DNA of 64,000 nt from positions 1-64,000 of IMG/VR virus record IMGVR_UViG_3300031951_021456; one strand, given 5' to 3'. Position numbers and translations under genes: made by a program. Below the pieces are notes generated by a model that had not been told where the DNA came from, ran no database searches, and saw only the letters and a program-made list of their open reading frames with translations. Of this stretch, positions 7,721 to 51,473 are shown piece by piece; the stretch's first letter is position 1, and the number at the start of each line of letters is the position of its first letter.

Positions 7721-8080
7721 ATGAAAATCTCTAGAGCACATAAAAATTTTGCAGCTCGGTTAAGGCATCAAACTTCTCTAGAATATCCTGAACGATTTCT
7801 AGGACCTAATTGGAAGGATGTACTGAACTTTTGGCTCTATTTGGATACTTTGAGTCGTGAAGAACTTAAGATAGTTCATAATCGTTATTGTGCTTTAGGG
7901 TGGGCGGAATCCCTAAAGAATCTTACACTGAATGCTGCCAAAGTTACTATCGGCTATGAATATGAAGATGCAGCTTGGTTGGCACCTACTTCATTTGCAT
8001 CTGCTTATGCAACCCTTGAACTCATTGGTTCTCATAATCTAGAGGCCTTTACATTTCTTCCCTTGTTTTTGAATCTATGA
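7721..8080 (+). CDS. MKIS/GPNW paralog family, array 1 copy 1
   Basis: LEYPERFLGPNWKDVLNFWLYLDTL...ATLELIGSHNL..FLPLF. Confidence 0.85.
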   Translation: MKISRAHKNFAARLRHQTSLEYPERFLGPNWKDVLNFWLYLDTLSREELKIVHNRYCALGWAESLKNLTLNAAKVTIGYEYEDAAWLAPTSFASAYATLELIGSHNLEAFTFLPLFLNL

Positions 8081-8436
8081 AAATCTCTAAAACTCATCAA
8101 AGACTTGCCGATCGCTTAAATGACCAAACCGCTCTAGAATACCCTGAACATTTTCTAGGACCCAATTGGAAGAATGTATTGAACTTTTGGTTTTATTTGG
8201 ATACTTTGAGTTATGAAGATCTTGAGATAGTTTTTAATCGTTATTTGGCTTTAGGGTGGGTGGACCACCTAAAGGATCTTACAAGGAATGTTGCTAAAGA
8301 TACTATCGGCAATGATTATGAATATGCAACTTTCCGTGCAACTCCCACCTATGAATCAGCTTATACAACAAGTGAACTCATTGGCTCTCATAATCTAGAG
8401 TCCCTTAAGTTTCTTCCCTTGTTTTTGAATCTATGA
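8077..8436 (+). CDS. MKIS/GPNW paralog, array 1 copy 2
   Basis: Same motifs, ATGA overlap. Confidence 0.85.
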   Translation: MKISKTHQRLADRLNDQTALEYPEHFLGPNWKNVLNFWFYLDTLSYEDLEIVFNRYLALGWVDHLKDLTRNVAKDTIGNDYEYATFRATPTYESAYTTSELIGSHNLESLKFLPLFLNL

Positions 8437-8786
8437 AAATCTCTAAAACTCATAAAAGATTTGCAGCTCATTTAGATAACCAAACCGCTCTAAAATACCC
8501 TGAACGTTTTCTAGGACCTAATTGGAAGGATGTATTGAACTTCTGGTTGTACTTGGATACTTGGAGTGCTGAGGATACTGAGATAGTTTTTAATCGTTAT
8601 TGGGATTTGGGGGTGTGTGGACCCCTAAAAGGTCTTACCTGGAGAACTGCTAAAGATACTATCGGTATTGAATATGCATCTGTTGCTTGGGATGTACCTT
8701 TTACAATTGGAAGTTCTTATGCAACCCTTGAACTCATTGGTTCTCATAATCTAGAGTCTTTGACTTTTCTTCCTTTGTTTTTATAA
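8433..8786 (+). CDS. MKIS/GPNW paralog, array 1 copy 3
   Basis: Same motifs, ATGA overlap. Confidence 0.85.
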   Translation: MKISKTHKRFAAHLDNQTALKYPERFLGPNWKDVLNFWLYLDTWSAEDTEIVFNRYWDLGVCGPLKGLTWRTAKDTIGIEYASVAWDVPFTIGSSYATLELIGSHNLESLTFLPLFL

Positions 8787-8788
8787 TT

Positions 8789-9220
8789 ATGACACTTTAC
8801 AAAGCAGATGTTTGGCTAGGAAGCAATTCTGGATTTCAAACCGTTGAAATAAATTCAAGTAGCATTGTTGGAGTCACGGAACAAATAAAAACAAGATATC
8901 ATGTAAAATCTGAAAATATACGAAACATTAGGACAGTTAATGATGAAAATGCCACCGATTCTGGTTCCCTTATTGGGATTGGAGGTTTATTTCTATTTGT
9001 TCTTTTTGCATTGTATCCAACTATAGTTCTCACTATCTTATTTGGAGGAACTGGAGCATGGCTAATGACAAAACTTTCAGGAAAACCATTTAGCAGTATT
9101 TGCGAAAAGAAAAATAGAAAACTCTATAATAGTATTCTAATTGTTAGTCTTCTCTGTGGAGGATTTGGATTTTATGTTGGAAATAATATTCAGATTCAGC
9201 AAAACTCACAAGAAAAATGA
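8789..9220 (+). CDS. Membrane protein interrupting array 1
   Basis: 2-3 hydrophobic helices in C-terminal half. Confidence 0.75.
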   Translation: MTLYKADVWLGSNSGFQTVEINSSSIVGVTEQIKTRYHVKSENIRNIRTVNDENATDSGSLIGIGGLFLFVLFALYPTIVLTILFGGTGAWLMTKLSGKPFSSICEKKNRKLYNSILIVSLLCGGFGFYVGNNIQIQQNSQEK

Positions 9221-9627
9221 AAATCTCAACAGCACATCAAATATTTGCTGATCGTTTAAAAGACCAAACAGCTCTAGAATGCCCTGAACGATTTCTAGGA
9301 CCTAATTGGAAAGATGTACTGAACTTTTGGATTTATTTGGATACTTTGAGTCGTGAAGATTTTAGGTTACTTAATAAGCGTTATTATGCTTTAGATGTAG
9401 ATGCTAGAGTTTTTGCTAGGGACAATGCCTTTAAAGCTGCTGAAGCTACTATAGTTCACGAATATGGAAATGTAGCTTGGTTGGTAACACCTACATATGC
9501 ATCTAGTCATGCAACCCTTGAACTCATCGCTTCACATAATCTAGAATCTAGTCATGCAACCCTTGAACTCATCGCTTCACATAATCTAGAATCTCTTAAG
9601 TTTCTTCCTTTGTTTCTAAATCTATGA
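9217..9627 (+). CDS. MKIS/GPNW paralog, array 1 copy 4 (internal 45-bp duplication)
   Basis: Same motifs; SSHATLELIASHNLE twice. Confidence 0.85.
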   Translation: MKISTAHQIFADRLKDQTALECPERFLGPNWKDVLNFWIYLDTLSREDFRLLNKRYYALDVDARVFARDNAFKAAEATIVHEYGNVAWLVTPTYASSHATLELIASHNLESSHATLELIASHNLESLKFLPLFLNL

Positions 9628-10040
9628 AAATCTCTAAAACTCATCAAAGACTTGCAGATGATCTAAACAGGTTGCACGACCTTCAAGGTGCTCTAGACCA
9701 TCCAAAATATTATCTGGGATCCAACTGGAAAGATGTCATTAACTTTTGGTTATTTCTAGATACTTTGACTATAGCACAATTATGTATTATTAATCATAGA
9801 TATTTGGCCTTGGATCGCGATGATAAGAATGTTTTAATATCCGTTTGGGATACTTATACTGGATGTGAGAAATTTTACTATCAGGTTGCTTATGAAGCAG
9901 TTTGTGCAGTTTCAAAACCAGCTTCATTATTTTGGATTCCTAGCGCAAAAGCTAAAGCAACAATAGAAATTATGGTTAGGGATGATCTCCTAAATTCTAA
10001 AAAATCTTTAGTTTTTCTTCCTTTATTTATAAATATATGA
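9624..10040 (+). CDS. MKIS/GPNW paralog, array 1 copy 5 (divergent)
   Basis: LGSNWKDVINFWLFLDTL...FLPLF. Confidence 0.8.
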   Translation: MKISKTHQRLADDLNRLHDLQGALDHPKYYLGSNWKDVINFWLFLDTLTIAQLCIINHRYLALDRDDKNVLISVWDTYTGCEKFYYQVAYEAVCAVSKPASLFWIPSAKAKATIEIMVRDDLLNSKKSLVFLPLFINI

Positions 10041-10825
10041 TATCATTTAATAGTCTCTCAAATCTAGGAAGACTTGGAAACCAAATGTTTCAATATGCTT
10101 CCCTCAAAGGAATAGCAAAACATAGGGGTTTTGATTTCTGCATCCCAATGAAAGATGTTGCAGGTAAAATTGACATTAATGTGAGAAATTCAGATGCAAA
10201 TATTTACAATACATTTAAACTAAAAAATGTAAATTATAATATCACACAAAATCCACAAATTAGAGAAAAAACATTCAATTTTGATCAAGACTTGTTTGAG
10301 AACTGTCCAGATAATGTAGATCTATTTGGGTATTTTCAAAATGAAAAATATTTTGAACACATTGAAGAAGAAATAAAAGAAGATTTTGCGTTTTCAAATA
10401 AAATACAAGAATTATGTAGAAATTTTTTAGGTGCCCGCGAATATATTTCATTACATATTAGGAGAGGAGATTATATCAATAATTCAAATCATCCAGTTCA
10501 ACCACTTAATTATTATGAAGTAGCTCTTAAAGAACTGGATGTTAATATTCCAGTAATAGTCTTTTCGGATGATTATGAATGGTGTAAAACCCAAACAATA
10601 TTTGAATCATCTCGCTTTTTAATTTCTGAAGGCAATTCAACAGAAATTGATCTTTGCTTACAAACTTTGTGTTCTTATCATATTATTAGTAATTCATCAT
10701 TTTCTTGGTGGGGTAGTTATCTAGCTAAAAGCAAAAAAACAATAGCGCCAAAGATTTGGTTTTCAGGATCTTTAATAAACAATGAATGTTCTGGTATATA
10801 TAGAAAGTCTTGGATCGTAATTTAG
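10037..10825 (+). CDS. GT11 alpha-1,2-fucosyltransferase-like
   Basis: GRLGNQMFQYA, GYFQ, HIRRGDY, SNSSFSWW. Confidence 0.9.
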   Translation: MISFNSLSNLGRLGNQMFQYASLKGIAKHRGFDFCIPMKDVAGKIDINVRNSDANIYNTFKLKNVNYNITQNPQIREKTFNFDQDLFENCPDNVDLFGYFQNEKYFEHIEEEIKEDFAFSNKIQELCRNFLGAREYISLHIRRGDYINNSNHPVQPLNYYEVALKELDVNIPVIVFSDDYEWCKTQTIFESSRFLISEGNSTEIDLCLQTLCSYHIISNSSFSWWGSYLAKSKKTIAPKIWFSGSLINNECSGIYRKSWIVI

Positions 10826-10827
10826 AC

Positions 10828-11610
10828 ATGAATAATCTTTGGGATGTTAATCAATCAATGATTGACAATTACTTGCAAGCATGTAGAGAATTTACAAATA
10901 ATGATGAACTCTTTTGTAATTTTAAAAGAGATTCTAGATATACTCCTGTTCTTGAGCATTTAACTGAAGAAGATGCTCGGCTATATTTTTCAGAGATGAA
11001 ATCTAAAGAAGCTTTAACCAATATAGTTTTAGATTCTGTTAAAGAAAATGATCTTTATGGAACACCAGTAATAATCAATCATTCAGAATTAGGAGCAATA
11101 TCTCCAACAACAGTTAGGTATCTTAAAAACTCCTTGGATATTGTTGCTGGCTTTAAAGATAATCTTCCCTTTAAAAAGGTTCTAGAAATTGGTGGTGGAT
11201 ATGGAGGTCTGTGTAAAGTTTTTAGTTCCTTTAATAAATTTAATTCATATTATCTTGTAGATTTTCCTGAAGTTAATGGTCTTTCTAAGAAATATTTGAG
11301 TAATTTTAAAGATATCAGGAACAAAACCTATCAAATTTCAACTAATACTCTCAGAGAAATTAAAGACATTGATTTAGTCATTAGCAATTATGCTTTCTCA
11401 GAATGCTCAAGAGAAGTTCAAGAAACTTACTATAATCTGTATATTAAGAACGCAAAGAATTTTTATTTAGTGTATAACAACTTTACCGAAAATAATATGA
11501 ACTCTGAAGCATTTATTGAAAAAGCCTCTAAAGATTTTGAGATTTCATTTGAGACAGAGCTTCGCCCACCCCACACTGTTCACATCATCTACGGGAAAAA
11601 TGCTAATTGA
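10828..11610 (+). CDS. Putative sugar O-methyltransferase
   Basis: LEIGGGYGGL SAM motif, ISNYAFSE. Confidence 0.8.
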   Translation: MNNLWDVNQSMIDNYLQACREFTNNDELFCNFKRDSRYTPVLEHLTEEDARLYFSEMKSKEALTNIVLDSVKENDLYGTPVIINHSELGAISPTTVRYLKNSLDIVAGFKDNLPFKKVLEIGGGYGGLCKVFSSFNKFNSYYLVDFPEVNGLSKKYLSNFKDIRNKTYQISTNTLREIKDIDLVISNYAFSECSREVQETYYNLYIKNAKNFYLVYNNFTENNMNSEAFIEKASKDFEISFETELRPPHTVHIIYGKNAN

Positions 11611-12271
11611 TTTGAAAAAAATTCCAGCATATTATATTAATCTTTCTCATCATACCGAGAAAAGAGATAAAATGGAGACGTTATTAAGAAAACTCGGGTT
11701 TAATATGATTATTAGATTAGAAGGATATAACTATCCAGATAATCCCTCAGCAGGCTGTTCTAGAGCGCACTATGATGCTCTATTTAATTATCATAGCGAG
11801 AGGGGATGTCCTTTTATTCTTTTTGAAGATGATGTAATTTTGAATGAAGAACAATGGCTAGATGGAATCATTGATATTCCTAATGATGCAAGTGCATTAT
11901 ATTTGGGCACCTCAACTTGGGGTAGAATGAATGGCCATAATGGAGAATATATTCAATATGATGTGCTCCAAGATCATCCAGGAGTTTTAAAAATTTATAA
12001 TATGCTCGCAACTCATGCAATTTTATATTTAAATAAAGAGTATGTTAATATGATAAGACGAGCAGCATTTCACACTGGTTATGTAATTGAAGATTATAAT
12101 GACGTTGCATTTGCAGAATTGCAGAGATATTTCAAGGTTTATGCTCTTGATAATCCACTATTTTTCCAGACAAGTAATTTAAATGCTACAAATAAGAAAA
12201 TTACTTCAATAAATCATACAGAATGTATGGAAATCAACCCACTTCAATTTTATCCCTATTCTTTAAAGTAA
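11600..12271 (+). CDS. GT25-like glycosyltransferase
   Basis: YYINL, GCSRAH, FEDD. Confidence 0.75.
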   Translation: MLIDLKKIPAYYINLSHHTEKRDKMETLLRKLGFNMIIRLEGYNYPDNPSAGCSRAHYDALFNYHSERGCPFILFEDDVILNEEQWLDGIIDIPNDASALYLGTSTWGRMNGHNGEYIQYDVLQDHPGVLKIYNMLATHAILYLNKEYVNMIRRAAFHTGYVIEDYNDVAFAELQRYFKVYALDNPLFFQTSNLNATNKKITSINHTECMEINPLQFYPYSLK

Positions 12272-12936
12272 TGTATAATATTTCTGCAGATTGTCAAGTT
12301 AAAACTCTCAATGACATTTACACCAAATATTTTGGATATCCCTCAACAGGTTTCTTTGTTGAAGTTGGAGCGTATGATGGTGAATTTGTGTCTAATACCT
12401 CATTTCTTGCAGATATGGGTTGGAATGGTCTCTATATTGAACCAATCTATGATTACTATAAAAAATGCTTAAAACGTCACGAAAAAAATAATGTAACAGT
12501 TGCAAATGTTGCAATTGGCCTTGAAGAAGGCGAAGTTAAAATTTATCGCGGAGAAACACTTTCAACGCTTAATGCTGAGCAAGTAAATCGTTATAAAGAG
12601 ATTGATTGGTCTTCTCATATTAATTTTGAAGAAACTACCTGCGATCAGATGCGTTTGGATACATTGATGAAAAAACTAAATGTGCCAAAAAACTTTGATA
12701 TTCTTGTTGTTGATGTTGAGGGTAAAGAATCTGAAATATTCCAAACATTTGATTTGAATGAGTGGTGCCCTAAAATGTTGATTGTTGAGCTTGAAGATGA
12801 GCATCCCTCATTTCAAAATTATCCAGATTTGATTGAAGAGATTAAGTGTCTGAGGAAATTCATCAAATCAAAAGATTATACAGAAATCTATAGAGATTCA
12901 GTAAATACTGTATTTGTTTTAGGAGAATTATCATGA
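12271..12936 (+). CDS. FkbM family methyltransferase
   Basis: FVEVGAYDG..SNT, W.GLYIEP, VDVEG.E. Confidence 0.9.
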   Translation: MYNISADCQVKTLNDIYTKYFGYPSTGFFVEVGAYDGEFVSNTSFLADMGWNGLYIEPIYDYYKKCLKRHEKNNVTVANVAIGLEEGEVKIYRGETLSTLNAEQVNRYKEIDWSSHINFEETTCDQMRLDTLMKKLNVPKNFDILVVDVEGKESEIFQTFDLNEWCPKMLIVELEDEHPSFQNYPDLIEEIKCLRKFIKSKDYTEIYRDSVNTVFVLGELS

Positions 12937-13661
12937 AAAATATCTGCATTTTAAATATTGCAACAAATAAGTATATTCAATTTGTCAATCCACTATTAGA
13001 TTCAATTGATTCTAACTTTTTAACGGGTCATAAAGTTGATGCTCTAGTCTTTACAAATCAAGAACTGGATGTAGAATCTGACAGAATTAAAATTTCTCAG
13101 ATTGAACATGAGCCCTGGCCAATGCCAACATTAAAACGTTATCATTATTTTATTAAAGAAAAAGAGCATATTCTTAAGTATGATTATTGTTTCTATCTTG
13201 ATGTTGATATGTTAATTGTAGACAAAGTTGGTGAAGAAATCTTAAGCGATTTAGTTGCAACTCAACATCCAGGAATGTGGTCATATTCTTCAGAACAATT
13301 TACATATGAAAGGCGCCCACAGAGTTCTGCATATGTTCCATTTGGAATTGGAAACAAATATTATGCTGGTGGATTTAATGGTGGAACACCTCACAATTTT
13401 CTAAAAATGTCTGAAGTCATTGTGGATAATGTCAATAAAGATTTTGATAATGGTATTATAGCTGAATGGCACGATGAATCTCATATGAATCGTTATCTTA
13501 TTGATAAACCTCCTACTCTTGAATTGAATCCATCATATTGTTTCCCTGAAGGGGCAGACTTTGATGGAAAGCCGACAAAATTTTATCCATACGGCTGGAA
13601 AGTTCCTTTCTCACCAAAAATTATGGCATTACAAAAAAATCACAGTGAATTTCGCAAATGA
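12933..13661 (+). CDS. GT6 (ABO-type) glycosyltransferase
   Basis: IATNKY, YLDVDM, YYAGGFNGG, WHDESHMNRY. Confidence 0.9.
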   Translation: MKNICILNIATNKYIQFVNPLLDSIDSNFLTGHKVDALVFTNQELDVESDRIKISQIEHEPWPMPTLKRYHYFIKEKEHILKYDYCFYLDVDMLIVDKVGEEILSDLVATQHPGMWSYSSEQFTYERRPQSSAYVPFGIGNKYYAGGFNGGTPHNFLKMSEVIVDNVNKDFDNGIIAEWHDESHMNRYLIDKPPTLELNPSYCFPEGADFDGKPTKFYPYGWKVPFSPKIMALQKNHSEFRK

Positions 13662-14410
13662 AATTAGACTTAAGAAGTATTCCAATTTATTATATTAATC
13701 TAGACAAAGAAACAGAAAAAAATAAAAGAACTCAATTGCTTCTACAGCAAATGGGATTTAAAGATATTCATAGAATCTCAGCAACTGAGCATAGTGCTGG
13801 GAGGATTGTTGGCTGTGCCAGATCTCATCATAAGATTCTTTCCCAACTTTCATCTCCTGCAATTATTATTGAAGATGATTGTGCACTTAATAAAGAATTT
13901 GATGGTTTTATTGACATCCCTGAAGATTCCGATGCTGTATATCTTGGCATTTCTCATTGGGGTAGATATTTAAATCATTCTGGTCCATATGTTCACACGT
14001 CTAAAACTATTACTGAATGTGTAAGAGTTCATAATATGCTTGCAACACATGCAATTTTATATTTGAAACAAGATTACATTAACAATTGTGCAAGAATAGC
14101 GAGATATTATGGATATACTATACATTGCCATGTTGATATTGGATTTGCAGAGTCTCAAAAATATTTCAATGTTTATGCCCTAGATGAACCACTTTTAAGG
14201 CAATATGAATGGTCTGCAATTACAACTGGACGACTTTCTGAAAATTCTATTGATATATCACAAGCGGAAAACTTTTATCAGCAGATTTTGAAAGATGATT
14301 CAAATTTTTATAAGCTAAATGAGGAGTTCAAATCTCCTTTTCGTCTGTTAATAAGTAGACGTGATGTCAATGGCATTCCTGGCTATTTTGTTCCAACTAG
14401 AATTATATGA
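13658..14410 (+). CDS. GT25-like glycosyltransferase
   Basis: YYINL, GCARSH, IEDD; paralog of 11600..12271 (shared NMLATHAILYL). Confidence 0.75.
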   Translation: MKLDLRSIPIYYINLDKETEKNKRTQLLLQQMGFKDIHRISATEHSAGRIVGCARSHHKILSQLSSPAIIIEDDCALNKEFDGFIDIPEDSDAVYLGISHWGRYLNHSGPYVHTSKTITECVRVHNMLATHAILYLKQDYINNCARIARYYGYTIHCHVDIGFAESQKYFNVYALDEPLLRQYEWSAITTGRLSENSIDISQAENFYQQILKDDSNFYKLNEEFKSPFRLLISRRDVNGIPGYFVPTRII

Positions 14411-15300
14411 AAAGTATTGTAACTGGCGGATGTGGATTTATTGGTTCACATATTGTTGATAAACTTATTGAGAATGGGCATGAAGTGATTGTCATTGACA
14501 GTCAAACATCCTCAACGAGAACTGAATATTTCTTTAACAATCTTGCAACGTATCATAAAAAAGATCTAACACATTATGAAGAAGTTGAAAAACTTTTTGA
14601 TGGAGTAAACTATGTTTTCCATTTAGCATCTGAAATTTCAATACCATATTGCATTGAAAATCCCAGAGAGACAATGCAAAATAATGTTATTTCTACTCTT
14701 AATGTTTTAGATGCATCTAAAAAACATTCAGTTAATAGAGTCATATTTTCATCAACTTCAGCGGTTTATGGTAATGGACTTTGGCTCCCAAATTATGAAA
14801 CTAATGGTGTTGATTGTTTGAATACATATTCAATTTCAAAGTATTCAAGTGAACAACTCTGTAAAATGTACTATAAGTTATATGGTTTACAGACAATTAT
14901 TTTTAGATATTTTAATGTTTATGGTGAACGTCAACCTATAAACGGAAGTTATGCTCCAGTTATTGGAATTTTTCTTAAACAGAAGAAAAATAATCAACCC
15001 CTAACTCTTATAGGTGAAGGATATCAAACTAGAGATTTTATTCATGTTTCAGATGTTGTATCTGCAAACATTTTAGCATCTCAAAAAGAAAATTTAGAAT
15101 TTGGTGGTGTTTTTAATGTTGGGACTGGCATCGGAACGAGCATTGAAACTGTCGCAGATTTAATTTCTAAAGATCATTTATATCTTCCAGAACGACCCGG
15201 TGAAGTAGTGCATTCAAGAGCAAATATAGATAAAATTAAAGAGCAATTAAATTGGGAGCCAAAAATTGATGTATTAAAATGGATCAAAAAACAACTATGA
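14407..15300 (+). CDS. NAD-dependent nucleotide-sugar epimerase/dehydratase
   Basis: TGGCGFIGS, YSISK, RYFNVYG, RDFIHV. Confidence 0.9.
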   Translation: MKSIVTGGCGFIGSHIVDKLIENGHEVIVIDSQTSSTRTEYFFNNLATYHKKDLTHYEEVEKLFDGVNYVFHLASEISIPYCIENPRETMQNNVISTLNVLDASKKHSVNRVIFSSTSAVYGNGLWLPNYETNGVDCLNTYSISKYSSEQLCKMYYKLYGLQTIIFRYFNVYGERQPINGSYAPVIGIFLKQKKNNQPLTLIGEGYQTRDFIHVSDVVSANILASQKENLEFGGVFNVGTGIGTSIETVADLISKDHLYLPERPGEVVHSRANIDKIKEQLNWEPKIDVLKWIKKQL

Positions 15301-16046
15301 TTGAAGTCTTTATTTTTACATTCAATCGGCCAGATTTTTTGGAGATTCAAGTTGACTGTCTCAAAAAGTTTATGGTGAATAAGTTTAGATTAAATATCAT
15401 TCACGATACAAGAACATTTCAATTTTCTCAAGACTTCATTGATATATGTGAAAAACTAAGAAGCAAATATAAAGATCTAGAAATTCTCTTTCAGCAACAT
15501 TATACTCTAGAATCTCTATCTTCTTCTCAATATCATGCCAAGGTTTTGCAGTGGACTACCGACAAATTAGTTGCATTTTCAAATGAAGAAATATGCCTCT
15601 TTCTAGATCATGATATTTTTCTAGTTGAAGAATTTGATCTAATTGAGGAATTAGATGGCTACGATATCATGGGTCTTCAACAATCTCGCTCTGATGTTAA
15701 ATATGTTTGGCCAGGTCTTGTTGCTTTTAAGGCTAATCTAGCTACAGAAATTGATTGGAATTGTGGAGAGTATTATGGTCAGCTTTTAGATACTGGTGGT
15801 GGAACTTCTAAATTATTAAAAAATCCACAAGTTTGTTATAAGAGCTATAATGTTGAATATCCAGAAATGTATAAATCTTGGCATCTAAAAGATTTAAATA
15901 TAACATTCGGCTATAACTTTGAACTACATAATGAAAAGTTTCTACATTATAGAAATGCATGTAGTTGGGATACACAGTATATTCTAAGAGACACAAATAA
16001 AACTGAAATTTTATTTTCAATACTTAAAGATGTTTTGAATGGATAA
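15297..16046 (+). CDS. Putative GT-A fold glycosyltransferase
   Basis: TFNRP...FLDHD DxD motif; island context. Confidence 0.6.
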   Translation: MIEVFIFTFNRPDFLEIQVDCLKKFMVNKFRLNIIHDTRTFQFSQDFIDICEKLRSKYKDLEILFQQHYTLESLSSSQYHAKVLQWTTDKLVAFSNEEICLFLDHDIFLVEEFDLIEELDGYDIMGLQQSRSDVKYVWPGLVAFKANLATEIDWNCGEYYGQLLDTGGGTSKLLKNPQVCYKSYNVEYPEMYKSWHLKDLNITFGYNFELHNEKFLHYRNACSWDTQYILRDTNKTEILFSILKDVLNG

Positions 16047-16848
16047 GAATAAATCAATCTATAAACTCTCTAATCTACCTCCAATTTTTTACATTAATCT
16101 TGATGATCATGAAAAGCGTCGTAGATATATGGAGAATCAATTTTCATATTGGGAAATTGAAAATTATACTAGAATTTCTGCATATGATGGAAGAAATTCA
16201 GATCTCAGTGAAATATTAAGGGGAACATACCCAGAAAATATGACGAGTGGAGAAATTGGATGTACTTGTAGTCATTTAAAGGCTATTCAACATTGGTATA
16301 AAAATTCAGAGACTCCCTATGCAATCTTTATGGAGGACGATGTTGATATTAGCATAGCTAAATTTTGGAATTTTACCTTTTCAGATTTTATCTCCAGAGC
16401 ACCCTATGCCTGGGATTGTATTCAGTTAGCAATTATTTCAACAGGTGATATAAATGTTTCAATCCATACAAGATTTGTTAATAGTTTCTCTACAGCTTGT
16501 TATGTTATTACTCGTCGGTATGCAAAAAAACTTATAGATTTACATGTAAGAGATGAAACTTATCGTTTAGATAATGGCGTAAAACCAAGAGCAACTGCAG
16601 ATGATTTGATATATAATGCTGGCCTCACATATTCCTGTCCATTATTTCTCTATACTCTAGAATTGGGCTCTTCAATACATCCAGAACATTTAGATGCATT
16701 TCACCGAAATTCTTATGAGGGCGTTTATAATTTTTGGTCTCAAATGGGAGCACAATTAACTTTAGATCAAATTACTGACTATAATCCATATTTGGGTCGT
16801 GTCAGTGTGTCATCTGGTCAAGTGGCACAAGAAAATACCAACACTTAA
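16039..16848 (+). CDS. GT25 glycosyltransferase
   Basis: YINLD...RR, ISAYDG, GEIGC..SH, MEDD. Confidence 0.85.
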   Translation: MDKNKSIYKLSNLPPIFYINLDDHEKRRRYMENQFSYWEIENYTRISAYDGRNSDLSEILRGTYPENMTSGEIGCTCSHLKAIQHWYKNSETPYAIFMEDDVDISIAKFWNFTFSDFISRAPYAWDCIQLAIISTGDINVSIHTRFVNSFSTACYVITRRYAKKLIDLHVRDETYRLDNGVKPRATADDLIYNAGLTYSCPLFLYTLELGSSIHPEHLDAFHRNSYEGVYNFWSQMGAQLTLDQITDYNPYLGRVSVSSGQVAQENTNT

Positions 16849-16885
16849 AAATTATGCTAGATTAAAGAGGTGGGATAAAAATCTA

Positions 16886-17590
16886 ATGCTTATTGAACAA
16901 CCATTTCCAAATAATTACCCAGAACCCTCTATTTTAAGGCAACCATATTCTGCACTAATAGCAACCAATGCAAATAGAAATCTTTCAATAATCACTCTTG
17001 AAGTTTCACCAGATAGCGTACCAGAAGATGAAGACAATAAATTACTATTTAAATTTACTAGATCTGGAGATCTTAAAAATCCTCTGATTGTTTATTATAA
17101 TGTAACTGGCACCGCAGAATATAAAAAAGATTATAAAGCTTCCTTTTCAGAATCTGAAATACAGCAACTTTTTATCCCATCTGGTGTGTCTTCTGTTATT
17201 GTTGAAGTTATTCCAATTGAAGACCGTAAATTAGAAACAGATGAAACTGTGATTTTGTCAATTGTTCCAGATGATTCTTATAATTTGGGAACAGTAGATG
17301 ATGTTTATGGTGTTATTCGTGGAAATAAAGCTGCATTTGCCTGGTTAAATTATGCACCCATTGCAGCTTTTGCTACACCTCTTGTACTTTCACCATGGGA
17401 TAATAACATTTATTCTAGAGATAAAACGGGTGATTCTGAGAAAAAAGAGCCACCCAACGTTCCAAAACCCGAATGTATTTCTAATTGCTATTATGTTCCA
17501 GAACCATTTTCAATTTTAGCTATATTTGAGGGCTATAAAAAAACCCGTAAATTTCGTAAACTAAGTAAAAGAGTTAAATCACATGATTGA
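16886..17590 (+). CDS. Calx-beta-like domain protein with degenerate PEP-CTERM-like tail
   Basis: V.ED....L.F.FTRSG....L.V.Y...GTA...DY...ETVIL; VPEPFSILAIF followed by basic tail; start moved behind promoter. Confidence 0.6.
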   Translation: MLIEQPFPNNYPEPSILRQPYSALIATNANRNLSIITLEVSPDSVPEDEDNKLLFKFTRSGDLKNPLIVYYNVTGTAEYKKDYKASFSESEIQQLFIPSGVSSVIVEVIPIEDRKLETDETVILSIVPDDSYNLGTVDDVYGVIRGNKAAFAWLNYAPIAAFATPLVLSPWDNNIYSRDKTGDSEKKEPPNVPKPECISNCYYVPEPFSILAIFEGYKKTRKFRKLSKRVKSHD

Positions 17591-18014
17591 TATTGTTTTT
17601 TCTCAGCCTGAAGGTCTCTCCAAAAGTGGCACAAGAAAGTGGAATAAAGAAGTTAAATCTATCAGGTTTCTCGGGGAGGCCCAGAAGGTTATTCATATAA
17701 ATGATACTAATTTTCCAGATCTCAATTATAGACATTTTGAAACCCATGCTGCTTATTATAAATTTACTAATGATAGAGAAAACTGGAATTATTTCTTAAC
17801 CTTTTTTAAAGACTTAGCTCCTACATCTGTTTTAGAATTATTTTATAACTTTAATAATTATGGTTCAGTTGTAGATGAAACAACAATTGGAATATTCATA
17901 AAAAATTTACTCACACAAATAAAAGAAATGCATGAAACAATATTGAGGTGTGAATCTGAAATTGAGGATCTTAAGAGTTCTGTAAGGAGTTTAGAGTGGG
18001 ATGCTAGGTCTTGA
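17583..18014 (+). CDS. Hypothetical protein, C-terminal coiled coil
   Basis: ORF overlapping the upstream stop. Confidence 0.7.
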   Translation: MIDIVFSQPEGLSKSGTRKWNKEVKSIRFLGEAQKVIHINDTNFPDLNYRHFETHAAYYKFTNDRENWNYFLTFFKDLAPTSVLELFYNFNNYGSVVDETTIGIFIKNLLTQIKEMHETILRCESEIEDLKSSVRSLEWDARS

Positions 18015-18039
18015 CACCGGCTCTCCAACGTGCTATGAT
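18011..18039 (+). promoter_or_regulatory. Sigma70 promoter
   Basis: TTGACA-17 bp-TATGAT with extended TG. Confidence 0.8.
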
Positions 18040-18065
18040 CAACATAAGTCGCAAACCCATCCCAA

Positions 18066-18620
18066 ATGAACCAATCTGAGATTTCTATTGAAATTGAAAA
18101 AGTTGAACAGCAACTTTCAGAGTTGCGAGAAAAATTAAAAAAATCTGAAACAAAAACACCAAGAGAAGCAAAAATTGGAGACAAATTGGCTGATGGTTCC
18201 ATTGTTGTTGAAACATTTCCAAATGCCATTTTAGTTGTTGCTCCCAAAGAGACCGAATATGTTATTAATTCAACAGATGTTCTCGGTGATTATATTTTGT
18301 CTTTTGATTTGGCTTTTGGTAAAATTTCGTATAGTAATAGTCATGAGTGGTTTGCCCCATCATTAGAAATTCTGGAGAGTTCTATGCGAAAGGTTCCAGA
18401 TGCCTTTAATGAAAAGGAATATTACATTTCAACTACGAAAATTACACCAACCACTCAGAGTATATCGGCTTCCGGCGTAATTCAACATGGCTTTGTATAT
18501 TTTGGGTTCTTAGGTGGCCCCGGCCGCCGAGCCTGGAGATATTTTCACAGCTCCAATCAGGTAAAACGTGGTCCTAAATTTAAAATACACCAAAGACTTT
18601 TCCGTTTCATTGCATTTTAA
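18066..18620 (+). CDS. Hypothetical protein, possible DUF1566/Lcl-like C-terminus
   Basis: WFAPS..YY.STT..VYF..G...RLFR. Confidence 0.55.
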   Translation: MNQSEISIEIEKVEQQLSELREKLKKSETKTPREAKIGDKLADGSIVVETFPNAILVVAPKETEYVINSTDVLGDYILSFDLAFGKISYSNSHEWFAPSLEILESSMRKVPDAFNEKEYYISTTKITPTTQSISASGVIQHGFVYFGFLGGPGRRAWRYFHSSNQVKRGPKFKIHQRLFRFIAF

Positions 18621-30182: not shown

Positions 30183-30921
30183 CTTATATTGTGGCGATTG
30201 CCTAAAAATTCTTCCTAATATTGATTCAAATATAGTAGATTTAGTGCTCGTTGATCTTCCATATAAAATGACGGCAGCCAAATTTGATGTTCTTATTCCT
30301 TTTGAACCACTTTGGGAACAATATAATAGAATAGCAAAGGAAAATGCGGCATTTGTTTTTACTGCATCTCAACCTTTCACAACTCTTCTTATTAATTCAA
30401 ATCTAAAAAACTTCAGATATGAATGGATTTGGGTAAAACCTCAAGGAACTAATCCAATGGTCAAAGACCATCAACCACTTAAGTCGCATGAGAATATTAT
30501 AGTTTTTTATAGGAAAAAGCCCACATATAATCCCCAGATGACTATATCAACGCCTTATGGTGGATTTAAATCAAAAACGAAACAGATTGGTGAAGTCTAT
30601 GGGGATTTAAAATCTAAGCATAGGACAAACCCAGAAGGAACAAGATATCCAAAAACTGTCTTGCATTATAAGCAAGAAAAGGGTCTTCATCCAACTCAAA
30701 AGCCAGTTGGATTGATGGAATATTTAATTAAGACCTACACAAACGAGGGAGAGGTGGTTTTGGATAACGCTTTTGGTAGTGGGACAACTGGAGTAGCTGC
30801 CAAAAAAACTGGAAGAGATTTTATCGGCATGGAGATAGATGAAGATTATTTCAATATTGGTTCACAGAGAATAGCTAAAACACCTAAACTAAATACATTA
30901 GATAAAATATTTGGTTGGTAA
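30175..30921 (+). CDS. N4/N6 DNA methyltransferase (beta class)
   Basis: GDCL, DLPY, HPTQKP, VLDNAFGSGTT. Confidence 0.9.
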   Translation: MIDLYCGDCLKILPNIDSNIVDLVLVDLPYKMTAAKFDVLIPFEPLWEQYNRIAKENAAFVFTASQPFTTLLINSNLKNFRYEWIWVKPQGTNPMVKDHQPLKSHENIIVFYRKKPTYNPQMTISTPYGGFKSKTKQIGEVYGDLKSKHRTNPEGTRYPKTVLHYKQEKGLHPTQKPVGLMEYLIKTYTNEGEVVLDNAFGSGTTGVAAKKTGRDFIGMEIDEDYFNIGSQRIAKTPKLNTLDKIFGW

Positions 30922-31926: not shown

Positions 31927-31983
31927 AGCCAGTTAAACAACTGAACACTCTCCACCCCACTTGGTCAACAGGTGGGGTATTAT
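31926..31983 (+). promoter_or_regulatory. Palindrome-associated early promoter overlapping a hairpin after gp32
   Basis: AAGCCAGTT-N4-AACTGAACA, 30 bp, TATTAT; hairpin ACCCCAC/GTGGGGT. Confidence 0.65.
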
Positions 31984-32002: not shown

Positions 32003-32380
32003 ATGAAAATCTCAACAACACATAAAGAATTTTCAGATCGCTTAAATGACCAAACTGCTCTAGAATATCCCGAACATTTTCTTGGACCTAATTGGAAAGA
32101 TGTATTGAACTTCTGGATTTATTTGGATACTTTGAGTGTTGAAGATTTTAGATTAATTATTAATCGTTTTTGGGATGTATGTGCAGATGCTAGAGTTTCT
32201 GCTAGGGACAAGGCCTTTAAAGCTGCTGAAGCTACTATAGGTAATGATTATACAAATATGGCTTTGTCTGCCGCTGCCGCTGCCGATGGCCCTGCTGGGT
32301 CTTCTTATGCAACTCTTGATCTCATTGGTTCTCATAAGCTAGAGTCTCTTAAGTTTCTTCCTTTGTTTTTAACGAAATGA
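32003..32380 (+). CDS. MKIS/GPNW paralog, array 2 copy 1
   Basis: Family motifs; start at MKIS. Confidence 0.85.
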   Translation: MKISTTHKEFSDRLNDQTALEYPEHFLGPNWKDVLNFWIYLDTLSVEDFRLIINRFWDVCADARVSARDKAFKAAEATIGNDYTNMALSAAAAADGPAGSSYATLDLIGSHKLESLKFLPLFLTK

Positions 32381-32781
32381 AAATCTCTAAAACACATCAA
32401 AAATTTGAATATCTGTTAAGATATAGTGATCATCACGTCCGTCGTCGCCAAACTACTCTAGAATACCCTGAACTATTTCTTGGACCCAATTGGAAAAATG
32501 TCCTGAACTTCTGGATTTATTTGGATACTTTGAGTGATGAAAAGCTTAATTTAAGTGATGAAAAGCTTAATTTAATTGATAGGCTCTATTCGTCTTTAGA
32601 TGATTTGGGGACCTTAAAGATATTTTCTTGGAAAGCTGCTAAAGATACTATAGATAATGAATATGCAGATGCAGCTTGGTGGGCCACTCCTACAATTGTA
32701 TATGGTTATGCAACTCTTGAACTCATCGCTTCACAAGAGCTTAAGTCTCTTAAGTTTCTTCCTTTGTTTTTAACGAAATGA
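32377..32781 (+). CDS. MKIS/GPNW paralog, array 2 copy 2
   Basis: Family motifs; 21-bp duplication. Confidence 0.85.
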   Translation: MKISKTHQKFEYLLRYSDHHVRRRQTTLEYPELFLGPNWKNVLNFWIYLDTLSDEKLNLSDEKLNLIDRLYSSLDDLGTLKIFSWKAAKDTIDNEYADAAWWATPTIVYGYATLELIASQELKSLKFLPLFLTK

Positions 32782-33143
32782 AAATCTCTAAAACACATAA
32801 AGAATTTGCAGATGATTTAAAAGACCAAACTGCTCTAGAATACCCTGAACGATTTCTAGGACCCAATTGGAAGAATGTCCTGAACTTCTGGATTTACTTG
32901 GATACTTTGAGTGATGAAGATTTTGATATAGTTACTAAGCGTTATTTGGATTTAGATGCAGATGCTAGAGTTTCTGCTTGGGACAATGCCTTTAAAGCTA
33001 CTGAAGCTACTATATGTGATGATTATGTATATGTAATTTGGTACTCTGCCGGTATAGATGCATCTGTTTATGCAACCCTTGAACTCATCGCTTCACATAA
33101 GCTTGAGACTCTCAATTTTCTTCCACTGTTTCTAACCCCATGA
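32778..33143 (+). CDS. MKIS/GPNW paralog, array 2 copy 3
   Basis: Family motifs. Confidence 0.85.
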   Translation: MKISKTHKEFADDLKDQTALEYPERFLGPNWKNVLNFWIYLDTLSDEDFDIVTKRYLDLDADARVSAWDNAFKATEATICDDYVYVIWYSAGIDASVYATLELIASHKLETLNFLPLFLTP

Positions 33144-33505
33144 AAATCTCCACCGCCCATCAAAAATTTGCAGATCGGTTAAATAACCAAACTGCTCTAG
33201 AATACCCTGAACTTTATCTAGGACCCAATTGGAAGGATGTATTGAACTTCTGGTTGTACTTGGATACTTTGAGTCGTGAAGATTTTAGGTTACTTAATAA
33301 GCGTTATTATGCTTTAGAAGAAGATGCTAGAGTTTCTGCTAGAGACAATGCTTTTAAAGCTGCTGAAGCTACTATAGTTCACGAATATGGAAATGTAGCT
33401 TGGTTTGTAACACCTATATATGTATCTAGTCATGCAACCCTTGAACTCATTGGTTCTCATAATCTAGAATCTCTTAAGTTTCTTCCTTTGTTTTTAACGA
33501 AATGA
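33140..33505 (+). CDS. MKIS/GPNW paralog, array 2 copy 4
   Basis: Family motifs; core near-identical to 9217..9627. Confidence 0.85.
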   Translation: MKISTAHQKFADRLNNQTALEYPELYLGPNWKDVLNFWLYLDTLSREDFRLLNKRYYALEEDARVSARDNAFKAAEATIVHEYGNVAWFVTPIYVSSHATLELIGSHNLESLKFLPLFLTK

Positions 33506-33870
33506 AAATCTCAACAACACATCAACAATTTGCAGATCGTTTAAGAAACAAAAGAGCCATAAAACATCCAGAAGAATTTCTAGGTAAAAATTGGAAAGAT
33601 GTTTTGAACTTTTGGATCTTTATAGATACTTTGAATGAAGATCAGTGGAAGAGTATTAAAGATGCTCATTATTCTTTAAGACTCCATGAATGTAATCTTG
33701 CTATTGATGCTGCTATTGATGCTGCTTGGCTTGCTGCAGGCGCCGGTGGATGCGATGCTGCTTTGTTTACTTCTGGTTATGCTGCTTGCGAAATTATAGG
33801 TTCTCATATACTTAAAGAACAAGGTAAATCTTTAGTCTCCTTTCCACTATACTTAAAATTTTCTCAATAA
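33502..33870 (+). CDS. MKIS/GPNW paralog, array 2 copy 5 (divergent)
   Basis: FLGKNWKDVLNFWIFIDTL. Confidence 0.8.
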   Translation: MKISTTHQQFADRLRNKRAIKHPEEFLGKNWKDVLNFWIFIDTLNEDQWKSIKDAHYSLRLHECNLAIDAAIDAAWLAAGAGGCDAALFTSGYAACEIIGSHILKEQGKSLVSFPLYLKFSQ

Positions 33871-46931: not shown

Positions 46932-46932
46932 A

Positions 46933-48819: not shown

Positions 48820-48976
48820 AACGAAAGAGTCTTTAAGAAATCTATTTACCGCTAAATGGAATTTGCCAAAAGCTGCAGATAATGCGAATCTTTCATACAA
48901 AGAAATGAAAATAATTTTTAATGAGTTTTGTGAGCTTAATCCTCCATCCTTTGAACCAGATCTAGAAGTGTCATAG
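48803..48976 (+). CDS. Small cyanophage-type protein, not in ORF track
   Basis: RPET..S...LFTAKWNLPKAA..ANL..KEMKI.FNE.C. Confidence 0.65.
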   Translation: MSTRPETKESLRNLFTAKWNLPKAADNANLSYKEMKIIFNEFCELNPPSFEPDLEVS

Positions 48977-49034
48977 TGGGCATTTAACTGTTGAAAAATT
49001 GATTTAAGCTATCTATAAATCACAAACACCCAAA

Positions 49035-49247
49035 ATGAATGATTGCCCTGGGGAATTTTATGATGAACATGAAATTGATTATAATGATCTAAATTTAACA
49101 GTTGTCATTTATCGCAAAAACGAAGATTATCTTTTACTGCGAAGAGAATTTGACACGATGATGGAAGCATTGAATTATGCTCAAGATATTGCTGGAGAGT
49201 TTAAAGTTATTGGAGTTGTCAGAAAAAATTATCCAGTGACAGTTTGA
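49035..49247 (+). CDS. Hypothetical protein
   Basis: ORF behind palindrome promoter at 48953. Confidence 0.65.
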   Translation: MNDCPGEFYDEHEIDYNDLNLTVVIYRKNEDYLLLRREFDTMMEALNYAQDIAGEFKVIGVVRKNYPVTV

Positions 49248-49316
49248 TAACTGCCCTATAATGACTCAATTGGCTTTCATAGTTGCTATGCTATGGAAGC
49301 CACTTTAAATGAATTC

Positions 49317-50351
49317 ATGTCTGATACTCCAGTTTCTTTCAATTTAGGTACACCTGAACTTGCGCAGTCTATCACAAATCATTTTATCACCAGAAGATAT
49401 CTGAACGGTGGTAGCTCACATTTAAAGACTTTGAAAATTGAATATGATTTGCAAAATCACGATCCCCAACAGCTTATTGATTTGTTTGTAAATATTGGAT
49501 ATAAAGTGATAGGTTGCCTAAGCACTGACTCATTATTATATAATGAACATAATTTAATTTATACTCGGTTCTTACGTGGTGGTTATTCTAATATTAGTAT
49601 TCATGGTGATAAGACTAATTTTGATGAAATTGAAAATCTTATTTTATCAAAATTCAACAAGTGGGATGGCAACAATAAATCTAAAATAAAATGGTGTTTT
49701 CTCAATGATTGTGGTAAGATTGAGTATCTAGAATCAAATTTAGAGGAAAAAAATCCACCCTTCACAGAAATGTATCCATTTCTTAATGGTGAAAGTCTTC
49801 ATGATTATTATGAGCGATATAACAATTCTTCTGCATCTATTCTCCTTTTGCAGGGTCCACCCGGTACTGGTAAAACTACATTTATTCGGGGGTTACTACA
49901 GCATCTTAAAAAGAGTGCATTATTGTCTTATGATGATGCAATCTTAAAAAGTGATAATTTTTTGAATATTTTCATTAAGGATAATAATATAAATTTTCTA
50001 GTTTTTGAAGATGCTGATGCTTATCTGACCTCTAGAGAATCTGGTAATAAGGTGATTCATAAATTTCTCAATGCTGGTGATGGTCTCATTTCTAAATCTA
50101 ATAAGAAAATTATCTTCACTACAAATCTTCAAAGTATTACCGATATTGATTCGGCACTTACTCGGCCAGGAAGGTGTCATGATATTTTACAATTTCGTAG
50201 TCTCACTACAGATGAATCTATTAAAGTTGCCAGCATTTGTAAAATCGAAATTAAATTACCAGAAAAAGAATATACAATTGCAGAAATATTTAATACACAA
50301 ACCAATACTGAGAAGAAAGTAATCCGAAATATTGGGTTTGGCAATCCATGA
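49317..50351 (+). CDS. AAA+ ATPase (BCS1-like)
   Basis: GPPGTGKT, FEDAD, FTTN, DSALTRPGR. Confidence 0.85.
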   Translation: MSDTPVSFNLGTPELAQSITNHFITRRYLNGGSSHLKTLKIEYDLQNHDPQQLIDLFVNIGYKVIGCLSTDSLLYNEHNLIYTRFLRGGYSNISIHGDKTNFDEIENLILSKFNKWDGNNKSKIKWCFLNDCGKIEYLESNLEEKNPPFTEMYPFLNGESLHDYYERYNNSSASILLLQGPPGTGKTTFIRGLLQHLKKSALLSYDDAILKSDNFLNIFIKDNNINFLVFEDADAYLTSRESGNKVIHKFLNAGDGLISKSNKKIIFTTNLQSITDIDSALTRPGRCHDILQFRSLTTDESIKVASICKIEIKLPEKEYTIAEIFNTQTNTEKKVIRNIGFGNP

Positions 50352-50707
50352 AAATATCCAACACCCATCAAAGTTTTGCAGATAATTTTAATCTCCAAAC
50401 TGCTCTATATTATCCTGAACAATTCTTGGGTCCCAATTGGAAAGATGTACTGAACTTCTGGCTCTATTTGGATACTTTACATTATGAAGTTCTTAGGTTA
50501 ATTGACATGAGATATTATACTTTAGGGGAAATAGGGACATTAAAGAAACTTTCTTGGAATGTTGCTAAAGATACTATAGGTCTTAAATATGCAGATGCAG
50601 CTTGGCACGCCAGCCCAACACTTGCAGATGGTTGTGCAACCTGTGAACTTATCGGCTCACACAATCTTAAGTCTTTGAATTTTCTTCCCTTGTTTTTGAA
50701 TCTATGA
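50348..50707 (+). CDS. MKIS/GPNW paralog, array 3 copy 1
   Basis: Family motifs. Confidence 0.85.
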   Translation: MKISNTHQSFADNFNLQTALYYPEQFLGPNWKDVLNFWLYLDTLHYEVLRLIDMRYYTLGEIGTLKKLSWNVAKDTIGLKYADAAWHASPTLADGCATCELIGSHNLKSLNFLPLFLNL

Positions 50708-51063
50708 AAATCTCTACAACACATCAAAAATTTGCAAATGATTTAAAAGACCAAACTGCTCTAGAATACCCTGAATATTTTATAGGTCCCAATTGGAAAG
50801 ATGTTCTGAACTTCTGGATTTATTTGGACACTTTGAGCGGTGAAAAGCGTAAGATAATTAGCAATCGCTTTGATAATCTTGAAGAGCTGGGCCGATTAAC
50901 AAGTATTACTCTGAAAGCTGCTGAAGATACTATAGGTGTTAAATATGTAGATGCAGCTTGGAGTGCCCCTCCATCATTTGCATCTGCTTATGCAACCTGT
51001 GAACTTATCAATTCACATAATCTAGAGTCTTTTAATTTTCTTCCTTTGTTTTTGAATCCATGA
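50704..51063 (+). CDS. MKIS/GPNW paralog, array 3 copy 2
   Basis: Family motifs. Confidence 0.85.
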   Translation: MKISTTHQKFANDLKDQTALEYPEYFIGPNWKDVLNFWIYLDTLSGEKRKIISNRFDNLEELGRLTSITLKAAEDTIGVKYVDAAWSAPPSFASAYATCELINSHNLESFNFLPLFLNP

Positions 51064-51473
51064 AAATCTCTAAAATACATAAAAAATTTGCAGATCATTT
51101 AGATGATCAAGATGCCCTAAAATATCCTGAAGAATTTCTAGGTACTAATTGGAAAGATGTTTTGAACTTCTGGATTTATTTGGACACTTTGAGTGATGGA
51201 GAACATAATTTAATTAATGAACATAATTTAATTAATGAACATTATTACAATTTAAATTGTATTCATGTAAAAGAAGCCAATAAGAAAGCTACTAGACGTA
51301 TTATAGGTTACTATTGTGCAAATGCAGCTTGGAATGCCACTCCTACAGTTGCATCTGCTTATGCAACCATTGAACTCATTGGTTCTCATAATCTAGAGTC
51401 TATTAATTTACTTTCATTGTTTTATCAATCAGAAACTTTTAAGTGTCACTTCAAAAACTGGACTAGCACCTAA
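51060..51473 (+). CDS. MKIS/GPNW paralog, array 3 copy 3
   Basis: Family motifs; 18-bp duplication; altered C-terminus. Confidence 0.8.
   Translation: MKISKIHKKFADHLDDQDALKYPEEFLGTNWKDVLNFWIYLDTLSDGEHNLINEHNLINEHYYNLNCIHVKEANKKATRRIIGYYCANAAWNATPTVASAYATIELIGSHNLESINLLSLFYQSETFKCHFKNWTST

Follow-up and report, generated by a model that had tools for sequence, protein, structure and literature searches.

The T-even phages carry an IPI-type locus in which a conserved N-terminal capsid-targeting sequence is followed by variable injected anti-restriction proteins. Multigene families are known in large eukaryotic DNA viruses, such as MGF360/505 of African swine fever virus (ASFV) and the ankyrin or host-range families of poxviruses. 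In bacteria, polymorphic toxin systems include homogeneous poly-immunity loci and poly-immunity proteins (Zhang et al, 2012; PMC3482391). The window analysed here is the first 64 kb of the 247,932-bp virus record IMGVR_UViG_3300031951_021456, termed G000, and between positions 7,721 and 51,473 it contains three arrays of a paralog family of small proteins with conserved ends and a variable core. Like the IPI-type locus, this family belongs to a T4-like phage and consists of small proteins with a constant N-terminus, a variable rest and differences between close relatives. Unlike that locus, both ends of the family protein are conserved and are predicted by the structural model to fold with the core as one domain, and a single locus is replaced by 40 copies over 16 sites.

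Constant ends and variable core of the family

Thirteen family open reading frames (ORFs) were found in the window, all on the + strand, 117–138 aa long and with intact frames. A hidden Markov model (HMM) built from these members matched exactly the same 13 in the window (E 1e-41 to 1e-61; next match E 0.1), in agreement with the initial annotation, which had placed 13 intact genes at these positions. As a statement of total family size that figure was too low, the whole genome holding 40 members. Array A consists of gene 1 (7721..8080, 119 aa, E 4.5e-59), gene 2 (8077..8436, 119 aa), gene 3 (8433..8786, 117 aa), gene 4 (9217..9627, 136 aa) and the divergent gene 5 (9624..10040, 138 aa, E 4e-42), whose orthologue in the related phage contig L053 is 93.5% identical. 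The five family genes reported between 7721 and 10040 are thus present, but they do not form an uninterrupted array and are split as 3 + 2 around an unrelated + strand gene of 143 aa (8789..9220) without a family HMM match. Array B contains gene 6 (32003..32380, 125 aa from its MKIS start), gene 7 (32377..32781, 134 aa), gene 8 (32778..33143, 121 aa), gene 9 (33140..33505, 121 aa), which was the member used for structural modelling, and the divergent gene 10 (33502..33870, 122 aa). Similarly, array C contains gene 11 (50348..50707, 119 aa), gene 12 (50704..51063, 119 aa) and gene 13 (51060..51473, 137 aa). The joining of genes by ATGA was seen as 4-nt overlaps at all ten family-to-family junctions, gene 1 with the next gene included. 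Such overlaps were also present with the upstream AAA-type ATPase gene, whose stop is overlapped by the start of gene 11 (50348), and with the downstream glycosyltransferase gene (10037). No Shine-Dalgarno-like sequence was seen ahead of the starts of the family genes.

The mean amino-acid identity among the 13 members was 0.73 in the N block (residues 1–45), 0.30 in the core (46–96) and 0.67 in the C block (97–119), and the nucleotide identity was 0.83, 0.62 and 0.81, respectively. When 25 typical paralogs were compared, the proportion of synonymous differences (pS) in N block, core and C block was found to be 0.38, 0.37 and 0.42, and the non-synonymous divergence was 0.11, 0.44 and 0.17. The ratio of non-synonymous to synonymous change (omega) was estimated per block by a Nei-Gojobori count on 12 phylogenetically independent sister pairs with bootstrap over codons, and it was 0.19 (95% confidence interval 0.14–0.26) in the N block, 1.28 (1.02–1.63) in the core and 0.32 (0.22–0.45) in the C block. 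On these estimates, purifying selection acting on the protein maintains the ends, and the core seems to change faster than silent sites by a modest margin. The conservation of the ends at the DNA level, as remarked in the initial annotation, is of the extent expected from conserved amino acids and codon bias; it involves no extra constraint, as no stretch of silent sites was specially constrained and identity there follows codon bias. Gene conversion or a DNA-level constraint behind the conserved ends was rejected because pS was equal in ends and core and the silent sites were not specially conserved.

The core had been called hypervariable, and this description fits one helical face of it; the segment as a whole is still alignable and its buried Ala/Leu residues are fixed, at positions such as L52, L59, A67, A71, A74, A75 and A87. 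Entropy in the core was anticorrelated with hydropathy (rho -0.43, p 0.002), and variability peaked at a period of 3.6–4.0 residues in each of the three core helices. Such a pattern is what would be expected of a constant helical frame whose exposed face varies.

The AlphaFold2 model of gene 9, made from a 106-sequence alignment, showed a single all-helical domain with a predicted local distance difference test score (pLDDT) of 96.9 and a predicted template modelling score (pTM) of 0.90. The helices in the model span residues 5–14, 18–21, 24–27, 31–42, 46–58, 61–78, 81–89, 94–104 and 115–118. Six positions (S4, G28, N30, N36, F37 and W38) were invariant in the 106 sequences, and H7, L20, P23, L27, P29, W31, V34, Y40–S45, T100 and E102–I104 were nearly so; the N-terminal consensus of the family is MKISxTHQxFAxRLxDQTALEYPE. 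The proteins are soluble and mildly acidic (median isoelectric point 5.65), and no signal peptide or transmembrane segment was visible in the family sequences. The idea that they mimic DNA was dropped, the isoelectric point being only mildly acidic. The scaffold plus variable surface proposed in the initial annotation agrees well with the confident all-helical domain, the purifying selection at the ends, the core omega above 1 and the periodicity of the variable polar positions.

The initial annotation had not recognised the family, and none of the libraries searched contains a match to it. The family domain gave no match near the curated cutoffs in Pfam, PHROGs, NCBIfam or PADLOC and none in the PDB sequence profiles. 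Foldseek searches with two confident models against PDB, AFDB clusters and BFVD returned nothing at E<0.1 and no structural neighbour. VIA-align, which is independent of Foldseek, gave a best Z of 4.0 for the short-form model against 48,161 PDB chains; a Z of about 14 is typical in this comparison for mostly helical models that Foldseek does not clearly match. The structure search of the ESM Atlas with the short-form model gave TM <= 0.34. Taking the fold searches with both models together, no Z>=5 was obtained and TM>0.5 was reached only for one uncharacterised phage protein. Thus, as far as these libraries go, the family is unexplained by any known family, and on the evidence of the models it appears to be a new small helical fold.

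Origin of the variants and distribution of the family

The turnover of the family was followed by comparing G000 with L053 and L054, two contigs of one close relative. The flanking genes were 90–100% identical between the two phages (pS 0.02–0.17, omega 0.04–0.5), and the ordinary family orthologues were 91–97% identical with omega raised to 0.33–0.47. At 84268 of G000, the positional orthologue was identical at residues 21–46 and had an unrelated core, giving an overall identity of 55% and pS of 0.33, and the flanking UvsW and DenV were 97% and 98% identical, respectively; by this comparison the difference is a replaced cassette. At 82 kb, two adjacent family genes of G000 correspond to one chimeric gene in the close relative, of which the first 147 nt resemble g82081 and the remainder g82434 (informative sites 17:1 vs 9:45, Fisher p 3.5e-9). 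The breakpoint coincides with the end of the conserved N block, and the chimera is, from its sequence, the expected product of unequal crossing-over between tandem paralogs.

In-frame tandem duplications, perfect or near-perfect, were found in four window members (45, 21, 18 and 12 nt). Gene 4 contains a perfect 45-nt duplication (SHATLELIASHNLES x2, 9501–9594), which is present in G000 and missing in the positional orthologue of the close relative. Gene 7 contains a 21-nt repeat in 2.5 copies (32529–32580, LSDEKLN x2), gene 13 an 18-nt repeat in 2.6 copies (51201–51246, NLINEH x2) together with an altered, longer C-terminus, and gene 10 an Ala-rich relic repeat of 12 nt in 2.3 copies (33699–33726, AIDAAIDA). 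In addition, gene 6 has a run of three CTGCCG units (32268–32285, AAAAAA). Recombination and repeat slippage as sources of the diversity had gone unnoticed in the initial annotation.

An unexpected, repeat-built form of the core was seen in a sister phage, IMGVR_UViG_3300042560_001323 (termed G001; complete, 243,166 bp, with direct terminal repeats). In 15 of its family genes, the core consists of 8–16 tandem 12-nt units of the form GCC GCC NGG NAT, which encode AA[G/R/W][D/Y/S/N]; examples lie at L055:4141-6171 and L055:16719-18029 and on L056 and L059. Among 186 units, nucleotides 1–6, 8, 9 and 12 were essentially invariant, the first Ala codon being GCC in 186/186 although the genome has ~33% G+C, and variation was confined to nucleotides 7, 10 and 11, where the common unit GCCGCCAGGAAT has its three adenines. 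Silent sites did not vary. Only about seven unit types occurred, with the states at nucleotides 10 and 11 coupled (TCT only). The exposed positions were restricted to G/R/W and D/Y/S/N, residues that are typical of protein-binding hot spots. At least three AAxx units were found in 138/378 database homologues fetched, and G000 retains only relics of such repeats (g33502 and g212058). We interpret the G001 core as a coding minisatellite that may be homogenised within and between genes by unequal exchange, selection keeping the bases of the exposed residues polymorphic.

In a tree of the G000 and G001 copies, the split by genome was nearly complete (2 label changes vs 19 expected; 0/500 shuffles as low), which argues that expansion or homogenisation is lineage-specific. 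Sister copies inside G000 often sit in different arrays, indicating that copies move between sites. Decayed copies with in-frame stops or truncation numbered about 3 in G001 and 0/40 in G000. As read from these genomes, the dynamics of the family are those of birth-and-death.

The profile search of the whole G000 genome (33% G+C, judged complete) gave 40 intact full-length family genes in 16 clusters, 36 on the + strand and 4 on the - strand, with a combined length of 15,795 nt (6.37% of the genome). About 30 copies were counted in G001, and the close relatives of G000 are represented by contig fragments with 7–8 family copies each. The nearest cultured relative, Synechococcus phage B23, has no family copy. 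There, gp32 directly abuts reverse-strand baseplate genes, and the five-gene array B (32003–33870) is thus an insertion at this junction; in a second synteny comparison, G000 and B23 were not collinear at the DenV locus. A word-indexed search returned 135 homologues and more than 531 with a second, repeat-type query, and an exhaustive profile search returned 439 clusters at 50% identity, of which 0 carried a name or a Pfam domain. No copy was found in 50,697 deposited phage genomes with G000-type and G001-type queries, and none in 185,579 prokaryotic species genomes by pattern scan. Within the reach of these searches, only uncultured large T4-like phages carry the family.

Longer homologues and gene neighbourhood

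Longer homologues carry an N-terminal extension of ~75 aa ('NQAAQNMVSFWEDP...CMCAQGQ...ETARILGISVSHS'), two in G000 and four in G001. Those of G000, of 209 and 198 aa, lie at 99412-100040 and 101656-102251 (L048:15412-16041 and 17656-18252), and their Cys-containing extension includes the HTH (helix-turn-helix)-like 'ETARILGISVSHS'. G001 (L055:4141-6171) and many metagenomic homologues have this architecture too. The 198-aa variant was modelled with pLDDT 88.8 and pTM 0.85, and its extension gave weak HTH-like structural matches of Z 2.4–3.4 (the AcrIIA1 N-terminal domain at Z 3.4, homeodomains and C.EcoT38IS). Other modules occur ahead of the family domain in relatives, namely an FlbD-like beta module and, in the distant relative P0211, a CopG-type RHH_1 (ribbon-helix-helix) domain in the N-terminal extension (24.7 bits vs the Pfam cutoff of 20.5); tandem two-domain fusions of the family domain also occur. 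Architectures with DNA-binding-type front modules and fusions are likewise seen in antitoxins, anti-CRISPR (Acr)-Aca fusions and poly-immunity proteins, a parallel that is suggestive only. A 387-aa ORF at 92611-93771 of G000 (L048:8612-9775) opens with the family N motif (LENPEQVLGPNCKSILDFWESLDE) followed by ~320 unrelated aa without a Pfam match, which hints that the N block is a reusable module.

The arrays form part of long co-directional gene strings. Upstream of array A are three small conserved phage ORFs (phrog_552, phrog_481 and phrog_2318) and downstream of it is a glycosyltransferase block, array B comes after gp32 and a 76-nt gap, and array C lies between the AAA-type ATPase gene and a gene for an NMNAT (nicotinamide mononucleotide adenylyltransferase)-Nudix fusion. 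The early promoters placed upstream of the arrays by the initial annotation were not supported, since sigma-70-like sites around the three arrays occurred at the frequency of shuffled sequence (22 vs 20.1±4.6, 18 vs 14.8±3.4 and 19 vs 18.2±4.0). Two arrays start overlapping the upstream gene or 2 nt past it and are thus internal parts of longer co-directional strings. The neighbourhood fits early or middle, non-structural expression of the family genes. The gap between gp32 and array B contains a GC-rich hairpin on the + strand (31954..31978; 10-bp stem, 6 G-C pairs, no T run after it), which may be an mRNA 3'-end stabiliser or processing site.

The 143-aa gene that interrupts array A encodes a predicted membrane protein whose N-terminal half is soluble and whose C-terminal half is hydrophobic, and it matched nothing in Pfam or PHROGs. 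In L053 its counterpart is 100% identical; the family genes on either side differ. Downstream of array A, ten consecutive co-directional genes of ~240–300 aa each (10037-17590) form a glycan-synthesis block with GT11 fucosyltransferase-like, GT6, two GT25, Methyltransf_21 and NAD-dependent epimerase/dehydratase members and several unknowns, which is kept at 92–99% in L053. The gene directly 3' of array C (51499-52560) encodes the NMN adenylyltransferase-Nudix fusion, which is NadR/NatV-like (phrog_395 + MutT/NUDIX). A DNA methyltransferase gene lies upstream of gp32 at 30175-30921, and three tRNA genes, two tRNA-Met(CAT) and one tRNA-Leu(TAA), were found at 3646-3715, 6851-6925 and 57688-57771.

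The T4-like nature of G000 is evident from gp32, baseplate wedge and tail-tube-cap genes, UvsW, DenV and RNA ligase. Its gp32 is nearest to those of Synechococcus phages B3/B23 (50% identity); despite this, a cyanophage host was set aside, as psbA was looked for in G000 and not found. IMG/VR labels the record a 'provirus', yet its genes are those of a lytic T4-like myovirus; the classification and the host look uncertain.

Candidate functions and comparison with known systems

From the anatomy of the proteins and analogies with known systems, we consider it on balance probable that the proteins form a repertoire that works in the cytoplasm of the infected cell, binding or inhibiting polymorphic host proteins. 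Anti-defence or host take-over, with a target of its own for each copy, would be the most economical reading, and it is the one offered in the initial annotation. On this reading, the N block (~45 aa) and the C block (~25 aa) make up the constant portion of a single compact domain, and the three middle helices keep their buried Ala/Leu while their exposed face changes rapidly. New variants arise by point substitution under positive or diversifying selection, by unequal or ectopic recombination between paralogs with the conserved blocks as crossover sites, by in-frame micro-duplication and, in the sister lineage, by shuffling of the 12-nt coding minisatellite. The genes are translated as part of long co-directional, coupled strings among replication, nucleotide-metabolism and glycosyltransferase genes. 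Each copy would then recognise a different variant of a polymorphic protein of the host or of a competing element, for example a defence effector or toxin. In function, the repertoire would resemble the poly-immunity loci of bacteria or the arrays of anti-defence genes in phages.

Several observations weigh against a binder repertoire. The core omega exceeds 1 with only marginal significance, and the count behind it was of the simple Nei-Gojobori kind and made on paralogs between which recombination also occurs. The core is prone to repeats, and its variation could come partly from tolerance of change. The conserved polar residues S4, H7, N30, N36, D42 and E102 could belong to an active or ligand site that all copies share, with a common biochemical function in place of pure binding, and the strong conservation of the whole N block, the first residues included, could mean that all copies dock to one partner and that the core has a different role. 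The link of the family to immunity proteins is also weak. Chain 8ows_A, from a polymorphic-toxin/immunity complex, was a recurrent structural neighbour at Z 3.5–4.8 (4.8 for the family domain of the 198-aa variant), which is below the noise level for helical proteins. The language-model neighbours of a repeat-type member included viral clusters labelled Imm5_like, DUF6931 and DUF6197, with feature scores of only 0.83–0.87 that are no more than a lead; the ESM Atlas structure search gave TM<=0.42 in this comparison. The Pfam HMM of Imm5_like (PF21805) gave no match at E<=1 in G000 or G001, that of DUF6197 none in either genome, and hmmscans of many family members were empty, Imm5 and Imm5_like (PF14423/PF21805) included. 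No toxin domain was seen in the genes flanking the arrays (gp32, baseplate, ATPase, NMNAT-Nudix, glycosyltransferases, UvsW, DenV and RNA ligase), and nothing relevant was found in the literature on the phage group or on Imm5_like and DUF6931 in phages. The poly-immunity parallel is thus better taken as analogy than as membership.

A more specific form of the binder repertoire is that it is combinatorial, a new helical fold presenting two variable residues per turn that are re-dealt by paralog recombination and the minisatellite, so that diversity against host defence or toxin proteins would be produced independently of a reverse transcriptase. We put this forward tentatively and regard it as doubtful in its full extent.

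The main rival is that all copies do the same job through their N and C blocks and that the core is a tolerant, slippage-prone helical spacer. The blocks could serve one conserved phage or host partner, or build a small active or metal site of H7, N30, N36, D42 and E102, the copy number then reflecting dosage or duplication by recombination and not a diversity of targets. The strongly conserved ends with omega of 0.19 and 0.32 and six invariant positions, the tandem micro-repeats in the cores, the variable unit number of the G001 minisatellite, the few decayed copies in G001 and the 387-aa ORF, in which the N block alone seems to work as a module, are all expected on such a common function. 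A passive spacer, however, would bring the core omega near 1 and not above it, and it does not explain why variation is limited to polar positions on one helical face with the buried Ala/Leu fixed. In G001, silent variation has been erased, yet the three nucleotides that specify two residues are polymorphic, which is hard to obtain without selection for diversity; moreover, 40/40 copies are intact in G000. We therefore judge a common function unlikely, though it deserves more weight than the alternatives that follow.

The proteins might instead be packaged internal or virion proteins of the T-even IPI type, the constant N-terminus serving for capsid targeting and the variable part as an injected anti-restriction factor. 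The phage is T4-like, as seen from gp32 and the baseplate genes, the family is polymorphic between close relatives, and its invariant N-terminus (MK/TxS..HQxF..) may loosely resemble the T4 capsid-targeting sequence. The N-terminal helix, however, is built into the globular domain in the model, at pLDDT ~96, and does not form a detachable leader there, and inspection of the consensus showed no (L/I)xE protease-site pattern after the first helix. The genes lie among replication and metabolism genes outside the head module, and in the long variants the equivalent N-terminal residues are internal. Packaging into the virion thus seems very unlikely.

Still less credible are transcription or DNA-binding regulators in which the first helix (IS..H..F/L...L) acts as the recognition helix of an HTH. 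The N-terminus of the 198–209-aa variants does align with '...ETARILGISVSHSxLLRxIN', a typical HTH-like pattern, their extension weakly matches HTH domains structurally and one relative bears an RHH domain. The short form, to which all 13 window genes belong, has no preceding helix and cannot make a complete HTH, no Pfam HTH model matched any variant, the long ones included, the proteins are acidic to neutral and not basic, and every structural Z is far below a trustworthy level.

Adenine-restricted variation is a signature of the diversity-generating retroelement (DGR), and the 186 G001 units, varying only at the three adenines of their common unit with zero silent variation, would fit template-directed adenine mutagenesis by a DGR or another programmed mutator; this is the least probable of the explanations and for G000 and G001 largely refuted, as RVT_1 of Pfam found no reverse transcriptase at E<=1 in either genome (matches were obtained in control genomes), no template-like array lies outside the family genes (all 134 repeat-pattern matches in G001 were inside them), perfect repeats numbered 0 in G000, and about seven coupled unit types fit shuffling of existing units and not independent mutagenesis of each site.

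To our knowledge, large paralog families are rare in tailed phages and 40 copies of one small protein are unusual. Against this background, selection must be strong for a 248-kb genome to give 6% of its length to 40 copies, all of them intact. If the family members are binders of variable host proteins, many new inhibitors of bacterial defence or toxin systems could be drawn from them, they would offer a natural, very small (~120 aa) and well-folding helical scaffold with a designable variable face, and they would provide an example of phage recognition diversity made without a retroelement. The G001 minisatellite is a clean natural experiment in which concerted evolution and diversifying selection would act together. 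Even if the function proves to be mundane, the fold appears new, and the family, with hundreds of metagenomic clusters, is at present without annotation.

Among the described systems, the poly-immunity loci (PMC3482391) share with the family small, cytoplasmic, paralogous proteins encoded in tandem arrays that have no toxin gene next to them, and occasional tandem fusions. Fast turnover by recombination and, in many relatives, Ala-rich helical repeats extend this likeness to the mostly-alpha Imm5 and Imm5_like proteins; unlike these, the family is virus-only, has no sequence or structural match and has no recognised toxin partner. With anti-CRISPR and anti-defence arrays and Acr-Aca fusions such as AcrIIA1, the family has in common small orphan phage proteins in co-transcribed strings and fast evolution. 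Some relatives carry a fused DNA-binding-type front module, as in AcrIIA1 with its HTH N-terminal and inhibitor C-terminal domains; the structural likeness to AcrIIA1 is limited to the N-extension against its N-terminal domain and is not significant at Z 3.4. Acr loci consist of proteins each unrelated to the other, unlike the dozens of paralogs of one fold seen here. The ASFV and poxvirus families and the phage DGR proteins resemble the family in lineage-specific birth-and-death expansion, a constant scaffold with a variable surface and recombination-driven copy number; the eukaryotic virus families differ in folds and hosts, and the DGR proteins in depending on a reverse transcriptase and template repeat that G000 and G001 lack. 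The family is not categorically new, because any new mechanism behind it is so far a proposed one. By analogy, it would be akin to the diversified viral multigene families and the poly-immunity-like arrays, within which its fold and the family itself appear new.

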